A DNA stretch of 45,941 nucleotides from Polymyxa betae A26-41 (lineage: Eukaryota > Protista > Endomyxa: Phytomyxea), in contig RBZT01000476.1 of assembly GCA_003693705.1 (NCBI GenBank), forward strand, positions 1 to 45,941, written 5' to 3'. A program made the translations under genes and the position numbers. Positions 1 to 31,883 of the stretch are shown piece after piece. How positions within the stretch are numbered: position 1 is the first letter of the stretch; the number at the start of each line of letters is the position of its first letter. Under the pieces are notes generated by a model. It was not told where the DNA came from. It searched no databases and worked only from the letters and a program-made list of their open reading frames with translations.

Positions 1-2168
1 GCCAAGTTGGTTGCGATATCATTAACTGATTGCTACGAAAATTGAATCAACCATCAACTCTCACATAAACATTTTGCAAAAAATTTACCCGTTGTTCTTG
101 GCTATCTCCAGCAACGTAAGTGAATCCTTCTTGTATCTTAGACTGACGTCATGAGATTTATGTCTTGCGGACGCCATCAGTTCCAAATCACTGGCTCCAC
201 ACCAAGATGCTAGTAGGTATGCAGTTTTTCGTAATAAATGTGTACCCCAGGGTCCATGGCGGCCAGTCACTTTAAGAAATAAATTCTTCAAACGAAAATT
301 GAAAGTGGAATATGGGATCGGAATGTCGCGGTTGTTTAAATCAGGAAATAACAGCTGACCTTCTTTAATTCCAGCTAGGTGAACATACGCGAGAAGGTGG
401 CGTTGAAGGCACAGTTCAGGAATATCGTCATCTCTCCAAATGCATAATGTGACTGGTTCTTTGTCCGATTTTCCTTTCACACGAACAGCTACCATAGATG
501 CCACGCCTTCAATGTCAAAAGTAGTCAATTCGCGTATGAATCGGCACTCGCCGATCCCGAATTCGGCTGCTTCTCCGTCTCGTAGGAAGAGCTTAATGTC
601 AAATAGAATCTGCACATATTCTTGCCACCCATCAAATGTATTTTCTGACAACAAATGCTTTCGCAATCTCATCAGCTCATCAGGAGACAATGGGGAGTCT
701 CCTTGAGCGCGGTTCCCTTCACTATCTACTCGCCCCTGTTTTACACAGTCCACAACCTGTAAAGACAGGCAGACATTACCTTGCGTGAAGAGACGAGGCT
801 TTCCAAGATGATGAAGGCAACCTATCTTCTCATCACGTCGGAAAGAATCCCAACAGTTACTGCATGGTTCTTCATACGCTCCGGTTTGACTGCGCTGCTG
901 GTGAAGGCATGCAATTGCGGAGCAGAACTGGGTTAAATTAATAGGAACTTTCCAGGAGCAGCTTGCTAGGATCTCACAGTTAGTAAAACAATTTAAAAGG
1001 CGGTTACCGGATCGTGATGTTATGGGCTCTCCTGCAGGTTCTGTTTTCCATTTGATGAATGAGCAAATGGAATCAGCACTAATTGAAGGGCAGAATCTTT
1101 CTGGTGCATCCTCGGATAGCATGATTAACGATTGCCAATCACATATAATAATTAAAAAATCTTGAAGCGATTTGAAATGACACGAGTATTGGGCTTTGCT
1201 CAGATCTTTCAAAACGCGACTGCCAGTCAACGAGCGCCGCCCTCCATGCACCAATTGCATGATTTGCAGCAATTTTTCGACTTCTTCTTGGGCTTTCTCC
1301 TGCATGGCCTCGGTAATCACAAGTCTGGTAGCGCGACCTCGCTTGCGACGCATTGATTCCATTTTGAACGGCATGTCAATTTCGCGCCTACGAGACACAG
1401 ACGCAGGCGCAGCCTCCTGCGTGGCATCCCCACGCACTCTCGGGATTGCGGTGGTGGAACGTGGTGGAAAGGTGGTGGAACCTATCATTTTTGCCGTATA
1501 CTTTTCGCGTTGACGAGATTGTTGAAAATAATCATTGATATCAGTCACATCATGATCGAAGGAACAATGAAGGTCGGTTAGTGATAAAGATACATTAAAA
1601 CGAGGACGTTTCCGGGAGATTCTTTCACATGGTTCATCATTCTAATAACGAGAGTATCAGATACTTGAAGATATGAGATTTGATGAAGAAACATTACATT
1701 GATAGTTTCCTGAATGGGAGGCAAATCTGGAACATTATCTGTATGATGTAATAATGATGTTGATGTTGATAACATTCCAATATCAGGTGGGGTGTCCAAT
1801 GTTTCACATAGTTCATTTTCATTGAATATCTGAATAATAAATCACAAAATCACAGTTATAAAATCATTTCATACATTAAAATTTACATCCAGGTTAAATG
1901 AACAATCTATGAGGTTGTTGAAATCGGGAAGATCAGAGAATGTTTGGATTGAATGTGATTCATAAAGAAGCAATTCCTATAATGCGTGTGATGTGAGTTT
2001 GTTCTGGCACAGAAATCATACTCCGGGCTCGGTAACATCGAAGACGAAAGGAGAGACAGTAACAAGGGTCTCTTCCAGCTGGTCTGTAACATTACTCTGC
2101 CCAGAGCGGAATGCAGCCAAGCACAGAGATACCTTCAGAATCAGGATGACAATCTTCGGGCCAACCAT
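1..2168 (-). CDS. Intron-containing tyrosine recombinase (Crypton-like) with N-terminal signal peptide and NLS; 3' end lies outside the window
   Basis: Exons 2168-2022, 1976-1887, 1829-1698, 1641-89 and 32-<1, separated by GT-AG introns of 45, 57, 56 and 56 nt; the spliced frame is open throughout. YR catalytic motifs: LFLRDGE (R), VKGKSD (K), THLLRKT (HxxR), SARH (H), LRYKKD (Y). N-terminus MVGPKIVILILKVSLCLAAF; RKRPR at 1600-1614. The ORF 'stop' at 85-87 lies inside a GG|GTAAAT donor, and the acceptor at 33-34 continues in frame as GNQLMISQPTW. Confidence 0.88.
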
Positions 2169-2189
2169 TTCCAGACAAATGAGATCTAC

Positions 2190-28718: not shown

Positions 28719-29827
28719 TGACTTTCAGGACAGAATGATTACTGCTCTTACGCAGCTAACAAAAGGGCCGCATGGGCCAGGAAATGTCTTAGATAAAAGA
28801 CTTGCTGCAGCCCATCACTGCCAGCCTCAGGGTACCTCCGCCTAGTATAATTTCTGATGTTGCCATTTGGTTTTTTTATCTTGAATGATGGAGAGCTCGG
28901 ATAGTGCGTATATCCAAGCGTTAATCCAACGAAAATATCATGATCAATTCAGTCGTGCTTAATTGGGTTTTGAATAAACATACTGACGACTGACGAGTGA
29001 CGCCAAGCGACGAATCCCTCTTTAATTTGAAGGTCTTTTGAGCCTCACCGGCTCAATTTTATCGCCCAATTCACAGAGCCAATAATTGCTATGATGTTGG
29101 ATGCAAAAAATATATCAGACCTGATTGGTAATGTTGGAGACACCGGCCCAGTGGCTTCAGACACAGGTTTGGCTACTACATCCGTCAACAGTGAAATACG
29201 GTAAAGACCGACTCGCTACACGACGTATACTTGCCTTGGGTGGATACAGCAGCTTTTTTTCACATTGGAATACATCATATTCAATTGTCCCCATTCGCTA
29301 GCTTGGTTTCTGTTAGTAGATCCTTTCGTGTTGAAATATAAAATGATAGATCGCAGACAGGTGGGCATTTCCGATATCACCAGGAGCGCAATGCATTCTG
29401 TCTGTCTGAGGCAAATTCGCACACTGAAGCAGGCGCTCTTTGTCAGCCCTATTCTTGTTGTATCCGCATACTTTGCCATCACATTGCAGATGGAATTTCA
29501 TGTGATAAAAAAGAGATCCGCAGCGTGCTCCAAGTCAGGAGAAAATGACACATTTCATCACTGGAAAACATACATTATTCGACAATCTGTTAATGGTGTT
29601 ATGAGTTCATAGCACGCGGTCAATCCAGTTCTCACTGAATACAGACATACACACAGAATCAGATTCTGTTTGCGGAATGTTTCTATGTAGAACAAACGTT
29701 GCTTGATTTCGATCCTGTCAGCAAAATTGGCTTTGGTTTGATGGATCAATCTCACAATTGTTGACACAGAAAAAATTGGAGTTTCAGGCACTTGAAGAAC
29801 TGAGTCAATTCTACAATCCTTTACTGA

Positions 29828-31883
29828 TTATGTACTCTGGTTAGCGTTTACTGGAGATTGAGCAGGACATTGTCCAGTAGGACAGGACAATTATTCTGTA
29901 GAACATGATAATGATCTATTTGATGTCCAAATATATGAGAGAAATAATTGACATCATTATTACAATGATGTTCAAGACAGTACAATATTGGATTTACAGA
30001 ATCTCGGAGATATTCACTCAGATCATGTGAAATTCAAATTCAGCTTTTTCAGGTAATCATTCAGTCGCTGATTACACTCCAATATGAGCTTCTGTGATAT
30101 ATTCAGAAAATACAATTAAAACTTGAACACAGTAATACCGTCCCAAATCCTTTCATAGAATATCTCAATCGACAAAAAGCAGAATCATCTCTATTAAAAC
30201 CTTATTTATTGTCACTGACAATGAGAGTCTCATATCCGCACTTTGTATCCTTGCCATTGTGTCTAGAACAAAGCGTCACAAAATGACTATGGGAAAACGG
30301 ATTTCCCCATCGAGATTGAAAAGTCCGAAGATCATTCTGACAGCACATTGTAACACAGGAAAACACTGGATAACATGTTCGCTGTAACCAATGATCACAG
30401 CGTTCACGTGTCAGGTTCAATTTCGAGTCGGTAACCTTGGCACGAACAAATTTTAGAAATAAACTGGCCACCAATATCAACTTGTCCAAAGTGGTCTTGG
30501 AAGTCAAAAGTTCCGATGTTTCGTTCAATATGAGCTGATTATCAAGAAACTTTAATAATAATGGGGTCTGTTGCAGCTGGTCTGGTTATCAGTGGTCGGC
30601 TCAAAATGTTCGTATCAGTAAGAAACGCGTACTCTTCATCATCAGGATGCTTTTTCTGAATGACAGATTGAAGGAAAGATTCCGCATTCAAAATGCATAA
30701 AACTCACCAGAAAGGCACAGAGTGTAGTGTAGTCTGTGATCTTCTCGACACCAAAATCAAACAACCAAATTCAGGCAAAACCCTACACTTTGGCAGAGCG
30801 GGATCCCTTGGTGAACCATATTTCAACCGTTTCCGGACGGATTTTCGTCATTTTGTAGAGAAGGATGGCCAAAATAGATGAAAGAGTAATTTCGAACCTG
30901 ATTCATAGCGAAATCGGCAGTTAACAGTTTGGGTGGGCATTTATCCCCGGAACATCTTTCAAAAAGTCCCCAATGACGGAATGGATTCCCCCAGATTTTC
31001 TGAAACCTGCGGAGATCTTTCTGACAGCAATGCATAACACATCGTAATACAGGACGACACATTCCATACATACCATGTCGAAATCTAGCATCAACCTTCA
31101 ACCAAGACCATTCAAGATTCCGGGAGGCCCAGATCAATTTCCGATACAGATTCGCAATCAGAATCAGTTTCTGTAATGTGCTGCGAGCATAACGGATTTG
31201 TTTTATTTCACTCACATTCAGATCATATCCGTTCACAGTGATAACTAATTGAGAGTTGATCTTGGAGCATTGATCTGCATCGTCATCGGACTTTAAAGAC
31301 AAAAACAGAAGCTCCTCATCATTCGGCTCTTTGATCTAATCAGCTGTTAATATACTGGCGGGCAGCACGGCTTGTCAGAATTCACCAGGCAGAGACTGTT
31401 AAAGTCATTGATATCCGTCACATAGTGACTGAGGGAATACAGAGGGTCGTTAGGAGATAATGTCTGGTAAGTACGACGATAACTTCAGCTGTTTCATCAT
31501 TTCTGATTATGAAAATCTCAGAGATTTCTAAACCATGAGACTAGATACGGAAACATTGCATTGATAGTCTCCTGAATAGGAGCTAAAGCTGGAACATTAT
31601 CTGTATCGTGTAATAAAGATGTTGATGTTGAGGGCGTTTCAAAATCAGGTAAAGTCGATGCGATTTCTTGCCGCCAGAGAAATCTTACTGCTGTGTCTGT
31701 GAGAATGGGAGGATCCACACTCACATTAAGATCAGGAGGATAGACGCTGACATTAAGATCGAAAGGATAGACACGATCAGGAGCCGCTTCCACAGAATCT
31801 GTAACATTACAAGGCCCAAGATTGAATGCCACGAAGAACTCAGATAGGCTCAGAATCAAGAAGACAATCGCGGAGCCAACCAT
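29828..31883 (-). pseudogene. Paralog C of the secreted Cys-domain family, probably pseudogenised
   Basis: Signal peptide MVGSAIVFLILSLSEFFVA and three Cys domains homologous to A and B. The donor after IQETIN is changed to GC, the RKRP codons are deleted (~31470-31490), and there are premature stops and frameshifts (e.g. at 30202 and 30823). Confidence 0.78.

Follow-up and report, generated by a model that had tools for sequence, protein, structure and literature searches.

A Crypton-like transposon in a conserved exon of a Polymyxa betae gene family whose predicted secreted products carry homologues of the transposon's own C-terminal domain

Cryptons are DNA transposons with a single, intron-containing tyrosine recombinase (YR) gene, no terminal inverted repeats, terminal direct repeats of 6 base pairs (bp) and a conserved C-terminal domain (Kojima and Jurka 2011, PMC3212892). 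In CryptonF and in yeast Gcr1, Msn1 and Hot1 this is GCR1_C, which binds DNA, and GCR1, MSN1, HOT1 and CBF2/NDC10, single-copy yeast nuclear regulators, are cases in which a host has kept the domain and recombinase function has been lost (PMC3212892). Crinklers form a large family, many of whose copies are broken and lie near mobile elements, and in which an N-terminal targeting part and a nuclear localisation signal (NLS) precede C-terminal domains of transposon origin (review PMC5289972). Here we analysed a stretch of 45,941 nucleotides (nt) of Polymyxa betae A26-41 (contig RBZT01000476.1, forward strand; hereafter the window), at the start of which the YR of a Crypton-like element is joined in frame to the first four exons, the header, of a gene family. 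Polymyxa betae is an intracellular root parasite of sugar beet and the vector of rhizomania. To our knowledge, plasmodiophorids are without RxLR- or CRN-type signatures.

The original prediction, made from the letters of the window, saw the header as a Crinkler-like delivery module recombined onto two different C-terminal payloads. The comparison with described systems points elsewhere. The P. betae element has the four Crypton features listed above, as CryptonS and CryptonF do; it differs from known Cryptons in its rhizarian host, from CryptonS in its termini (GAYTAT, against TATGG in most CryptonS; PMC3212892) and from CryptonF in having no sequence match to GCR1_C (a structural match is described below). 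The gene family resembles the yeast Crypton-derived genes, except that the domain is triplicated, lies behind a predicted signal peptide and is present in about 100 gene copies. It resembles Crinklers in its general build, its size and its broken copies. However, the LxLFLAK, DWL and HVLVxxP motifs are absent from the header exon translations, a hydrophobic predicted signal peptide of the classical kind and an acidic linker of low complexity appear to stand where Crinklers have a ubiquitin-like header, there is one payload type, and the junction is an insertion site.

The header-recombinase junction

The interrupted gene and the element lie on the minus strand at the left end of the window.
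2022..2168, minus strand: exon 1 of the interrupted family gene, with the ATG and a predicted signal peptide; an open stretch of 147 nt with a GT donor and a 9-residue hydropathy of 2.76
1887..1976, minus strand: exon 2 (acidic linker), AG/GT, 90 nt, phase 0
1698..1829, minus strand: exon 3 (acidic linker), AG/GT, 132 nt, phase 0
1528..1641, minus strand: exon 4 as far as the insertion, with an NLS-like RKRPR at about 1600-1614
1528..1533, minus strand: GATTAT, the 6-bp target or terminal direct repeat of the Crypton-like element
1..1527, minus strand: left part of the Crypton-like element of about 2.4 kb; the contig ends within it
89..1488, minus strand: YR exon from the element's own ATG (1488), with R, K, HxxR, H and Y motifs and a frame open back to the element end
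33..88, minus strand: 56-nt intron between the YR exon and the C-terminal-domain exons, skipped in contigs of runs X3 and X10; the next two exons are in frame in the copy on contig C375

Self-BLAST of the window matched the header at 1528-2182 to 18405-19099 in gene A (73% DNA identity, E 2e-113) and, in two pieces each, to gene B (21332-21593 and 21698-21842) and gene C (31484-31650 and 31755-31888). The four homologous headers of the original prediction are thus where it had placed them. They are 70-80% identical in DNA and have phase-0 GT-AG introns. The shared exon structure holds in full for the YR copy and gene A, with four open header exons and introns at equivalent positions; in genes B and C exon 2 and introns 1-2 are gone. 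The signal-peptide-like start that had been noted is likewise borne out by the hydropathy of exon 1.

Homology between the other headers and the YR copy ends sharply at 1528, after the D-Y codons, as had been noticed. The end of homology had also been taken for the end of a motif, which it is not: past the junction codon, 22 of 24 distinct readable headers continue as xSLCxFL and a GT donor, the other two (the window and contig C40) continuing into YR, and the motif across the junction is also kept in Spongospora (DYxSLCxFL, A0A0H5REK9). On these alignments, therefore, the break point of the YR copy sits within a conserved motif.

We searched the genome contigs (1,001 contigs, 27,085,814 bases) and found 57 DNA matches to the header and 152 and 141 matches to the payload exons, many of them partial or with stops; the family comprises about 100 copies. 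Spliced gene models were evaluated one exon at a time, and broken copies (B, C, C40 and the interrupted gene) were left unrepaired. A manual comparison of header and payload coordinates placed family payload exons behind 33 of the 35 headers extending to the junction (4 of these 33 partly deleted or displaced) and YR behind the other two. A catalogue of C-termini had been suggested as a check; behind these 35 headers there were two kinds of sequence, the family payload and the YR element, and no range of varied payloads. Header exons 1-3 are tandemly duplicated in copies on C937, C791, C40, C687, C311, C964, C638, C431 and C902, so that the linker differs between copies by gain and loss of whole exons. 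A more distant payload subfamily (33-40% identity) was seen on C69, C599, C584, C237, C145, C777, C716 and other contigs.

The element itself is present in eight genome copies that are 97-98% identical. Six of the eight are headerless and lie in unrelated flanks, and their homology to the window stops at the identical place. In seven of the eight, the left end reads GAYTAT followed by TTTCAAC, mostly as A-N4-T-GAYTAT; the four right ends that were found read ACAACA followed by GAYTAT or GATAAT, and the terminal hexamer pairs of the copies on C375 and C39 are degenerate. These two full-length copies (2442 nt and 2350 nt, respectively) are filled by the YR and C-terminal exons. A 20-bp direct repeat near both element ends (in C375; window 1450-1475) is a candidate binding site for the element's C-terminal domain. 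The catalytic motifs LFLR, HxxRK, ARH and Y align with those of YR homologues, so that the R-H-R-Y residues are present; the homologues include a P. brassicae 'Tyr recombinase domain-containing protein', and weak Phage_integrase and NDC10_II matches occur among relatives in Pfam, although the window's YR open reading frame (ORF) had no Pfam match. The element answers the description of a Crypton in its YR residues, in its short terminal direct repeats without inverted or long direct ones, and in its dispersed, near-identical copies that sit in unrelated flanks and contain no reverse transcriptase. Several older, divergent YR element families (30-50% identity) are also present in the P. betae genome, and most of those checked share the C-terminal domain.

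The counterpart of the left junction was found on C737, where the right end of an element runs directly into the rest of family exon 4 and its donor, with GATTAT repeated, and payload exon 5 begins 117 nt further on, the usual distance. Because this right end continues into the family exon behind a repeated hexamer, these alignments establish the header-YR junction as the left end of a Crypton-like transposon inserted into a conserved exon and flanked on either side by the hexamer, the arrangement described for Cryptons (PMC3212892). Between its left end and its own ATG the element has 13 open codons, which makes an in-frame header-YR fusion automatic at this site; the open frame that had been read from exon 4 into the recombinase is accordingly there. 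The proposed header swap reduces to an ordinary transposon insertion.

The payload repeats and the element's C-terminal domain

The family members in the window that carry payload exons are as follows.
16816..19085, minus strand: gene A, an intact family member of about 651 amino acids (aa), every exon open and in phase; exons 19085-18912, 18859-18770, 18706-18575, 18518-18384, 18333-17713, 17664-17128 and 17082-16816, the last intron (45 nt) being placed by its GT-AG ends and a frame jump common to many paralogues
17938..18249, minus strand: gene A payload repeat 1 (homologue of the Crypton C-terminal domain), HH probability 97.8, E 8.7e-13, model predicted local distance difference test (pLDDT) 88.6
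17248..17568, minus strand: gene A payload repeat 2, HH probability 97.0, E 8.8e-11
16846..17082, minus strand: gene A payload repeat 3 (C-terminal half aligned), HH probability 97.1, E 4.7e-11 over 54 columns
19714..21826, minus strand: gene B, lacking exon 2; with the gene A splice model its reading frame breaks close to where exon 5 ends (exon 5 of 635 nt, next exon phase 0)
29830..31883, minus strand: gene C, a broken member with GC at donor 3, a frame break in exon 4 with loss of the NLS, and stops downstream

Behind intron 33-88 the YR frame continues through two more in-frame exons into a C-terminal domain of about 100 aa, which is helical and has the motifs P-x3-C and C-x-G-x-C. Hidden Markov models (HMMs) built solely from the payload repeats matched the region behind YR in seven YR loci of the genome other than the window's, and an eighth weakly (E down to 2e-7); they also matched the C-termini of YR proteins from outside, one of them from P. 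brassicae. Profile comparison with the element's domain gave the HH probabilities listed above for each of the three repeats, and the predicted models of the element domain and of a payload repeat (pLDDT 84.6 and 88.6) have a common helix order. On the strength of these profile matches, the three Cys-rich payload repeats are homologous to the transposon's own C-terminal domain. A C-terminus derived from a transposable element had been proposed and is upheld by these matches. The idea of two different payloads is not: both carry one and the same domain, and what lies on the YR side is a multicopy transposon that also occurs on its own and whose end sets the position of the junction.

A profile search found 588 relatives of the domain at 50% clustering. 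Among the sequences retrieved, 39 of 47 long proteins with the domain carry YR and one terminal copy, and most of the remaining long proteins have a hydrophobic, signal-peptide-like start and three domain copies. No Pfam family was found for the domain with the window ORFs, the C-terminal domain or 115 aligned members. The best structural match in the Atlas was a eukaryotic GCR1_C cluster (template modelling (TM) score 0.56/0.51, 83 residues, root-mean-square deviation 2.9), which makes a likeness of the predicted fold to GCR1_C a lead and not a proof. An Atlas feature search returned nothing usable, and no match was found in the phage collection or by a metagenome pattern scan.

A signal peptide, an acidic linker and three Crypton domains were also found together in Spongospora and in marine metagenomes. 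Two uncharacterised proteins of Spongospora subterranea, A0A0H5REK9 and A0A0H5QYM5, have three domain copies each, and A0A0H5REK9 also has a signal peptide. A0A0H5REK9 appears in a SignalP-based secretome list with a pLDDT of 55.9, below that table's mark of 65 (PMC12503489); we found no account of it as a family in the literature. Two eukaryotic metagenome contigs (L061 and L062, from GROS21-1) from marine projects, the habitat being taken from sample names, carry intronless signal-peptide genes with two or three domain copies, in tandem on L062. A protein of the diatom Seminavis robusta (P0162) combines two helicase-associated (HA) domains with two domain copies. A tree built from 63 domains united the repeats of Polymyxa and Spongospora in one clade (support 96/92) that weakly adjoins the window-type element (66/81). 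The metagenome repeats branch elsewhere, without a resolved position, and possibly represent a separate recruitment of the domain.

We calculated ratios of nonsynonymous to synonymous substitution rates (dN/dS) from the stop-free copies. Repeats 1-2 gave values of 0.51 and 0.59, and the repeat 1 core gave 0.26-0.31: the payload repeats are under purifying selection. In the signal and linker exons (exons 1 and 3) dN/dS was about 0.8, which, with the loss and duplication of whole header exons, fits a linker.

Origin of the family and alternative explanations

We consider the insertion of a Crypton-like element into a gene family that is itself derived from a transposon domain to be the best explanation, and a likely one. 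The element inserts at GAYTAT, usually within A-N4-T-GAYTAT, and leaves the hexamer at both ends. The D-Y codons of the conserved family exon form such a target site, occupied in two paralogues (window and C40); the in-frame read-through from header to YR is a by-product, with the normal payload pushed about 2.4 kb downstream. The family itself may go back to an ancestor of Polymyxa and Spongospora in which the C-terminal domain was placed behind a signal peptide, acidic linker and NLS, after which the recombinase would have been lost, the domain triplicated and the gene amplified. We infer the direction from transposon to secreted protein because the domain is widely tied to YRs. The family probably consists of nucleus-targeted effectors derived from a transposon domain, into which the parent element has by chance re-inserted in frame.

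The parasite may secrete these proteins into the root cell, where they would enter the nucleus and use their three repeats to bind DNA or chromatin of the host; the acidic linker could serve for activation. Delivery and DNA binding are inferred for the family, and we put forward secretion into the host cell with binding of host DNA or chromatin as its most likely working mode, with confidence a little short of even. A wider reading is more speculative: plasmodiophorids and, separately, a marine eukaryote may have made a Crypton end-binding domain into a large family of secreted triple-repeat DNA-binding effectors that target the host nucleus, the window insertion then representing the route by which a Crypton protein acquires a signal peptide and NLS.

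The family of predicted secreted proteins built from a transposon domain is the real finding and previously undescribed; within incomplete coverage of the literature we met no secreted proteins that were described as having the C-terminal domain of a Crypton. A recent structural survey had reported no large effector cluster in P. betae (PMC12503489). The rhizomania vector has a candidate family of about 100 copies, common to it and the powdery-scab agent, whose origin is traceable and whose activity, DNA or chromatin binding, is testable. With it, Crypton domestication reaches beyond the transcription factors of yeast to secreted proteins of a parasite; it also defines a domain with many relatives and no Pfam entry.

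Several observations weigh against this explanation. Many family copies are interrupted by stops. The domain tree is short, and the direction from transposon to secreted protein is not rooted by it. With Pfam, none of the 115 members matched GCR1_C (PF12550) in sequence, the GCR1_C cluster is the sole Atlas match with a TM score above 0.5 by query, a single borderline one, and searches of the PDB (sequence profile, Foldseek and VIA-align) returned generic helical matches alone (best Z 4.6 and 6.5). Both fusion contigs end within the element, so that the right junction on C737 is not assignable to either. In a read check made with assembled contigs of four runs over 3,000 letters, no contig bridged position 1525; contigs break at the element end, and this shows neither presence nor absence of the junction. 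Run X1 reproduced the upstream part of the window header (1869-2400) without a difference.

The alternative that survives best keeps the same origin and assigns the family another role: the repeats could be metal- or disulfide-stabilised protein-binding modules, or act within the parasite, in the spore wall or in its own nucleus. Their conserved Cys and His residues, the lack of a clear DNA-binding fold among PDB matches and the weakness of the GCR1_C match would agree with this. However, most headers have an RKRPR-like, NLS-like motif, 106 of 138 homologues have a basic cluster ahead of their last domain copy, and the domain, which derives from a protein that acts on DNA, is joined to HA domains in the diatom. 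We regard this alternative as possible but doubtful.

It is less likely that the element inserted once and that ectopic recombination or conversion between paralogues then placed YR behind the second header. The junction position is identical in the window and C40, and one junction of a right end with payload (C737) stands against two left junctions. Yet site-specific integration predicts the same position and orientation anyway, and right ends are under-assembled (4 found, against 8 left ends). The headers of the window and C40 are 76-80% identical (paralogue median 78.6%), whereas their elements are 96-97% identical, and this difference makes two insertions more likely than one. Even the 230 nt next to the junction are only 80% identical between the two headers, and the element on C40 is no nearer to the window copy than to the remaining copies.

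A selected, secreted recombinase effector formed by the header-YR fusion appears very unlikely. In the window the header exons and YR are open and in frame with catalytic motifs present, and the GT-AG intron 33-88 is missing from contigs of runs X3 and X10, which shows transcription and splicing of some copy of the element. But the C40 fusion has a frameshift in exon 4 and a stop in YR, another element lies about 45 nt upstream of the window ATG, and neither a spliced nor a junction-spanning contig of the window copy was seen in the four runs. What run X3 does contain is a contig of a paralogous header from which intron 3 is missing (joint 1641-1729, 29 exon-like letters lying in between); splicing thus follows the model in at least one family member. 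Two family insertions among eight copies are also compatible with chance when the window copy is set aside: with about 3,500-11,800 GAYTAT-type sites genome-wide and about 100 in the family, the probability of a second family insertion among the other seven copies is roughly 7-20%, and the element need not target the family specially.

A Crinkler-like system, with a delivery header that recombination at DVTDINDY has joined to many payloads of unrelated kinds, is harder still to maintain. The sharp end of homology, the numerous header copies and the duplication or deletion of header exons 1-3 in some of them are what it would lead one to expect, but one payload family stands behind 33 of 35 full headers, and at the junction lies the end of a transposon whose target is duplicated, within a motif conserved to Spongospora. 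Misassembly of the junction is the least likely. The assembly is from short reads, the contig ends in a repeat and no contig bridges the join; yet its position coincides exactly with the target hexamer, a join of the same kind with a different header exists on C40, and C737 holds the complementary right junction.

Other features of the window

A separate element begins close upstream of the interrupted gene, where header homology ends at about 2182-2190.
2216..5364, no strand assigned: separate element with inverted ends of about 93 bp (inverted match 2216-2307 / 5273-5364, 85%)
This element is without a long ORF, has inner parts that are high-copy by read depth and cuts the header off from its upstream region. 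A Copia long terminal repeat (LTR) retrotransposon lies between genes B and C at 23859-28303, with LTRs of 207 bp that are 97% identical and a fragmented coding region. A perfect 129-bp tandem duplication at 6052-6308 is recent or an assembly artefact, and a run of N lies near 37110-37180. By eye, 7130-9020 contains pieces resembling gypsy-type integrase and reverse transcriptase, and the intron-rich genes at 11400-15720 and 35200-39450 look like those for a GRIP-domain golgin and for a polycystin-like channel.

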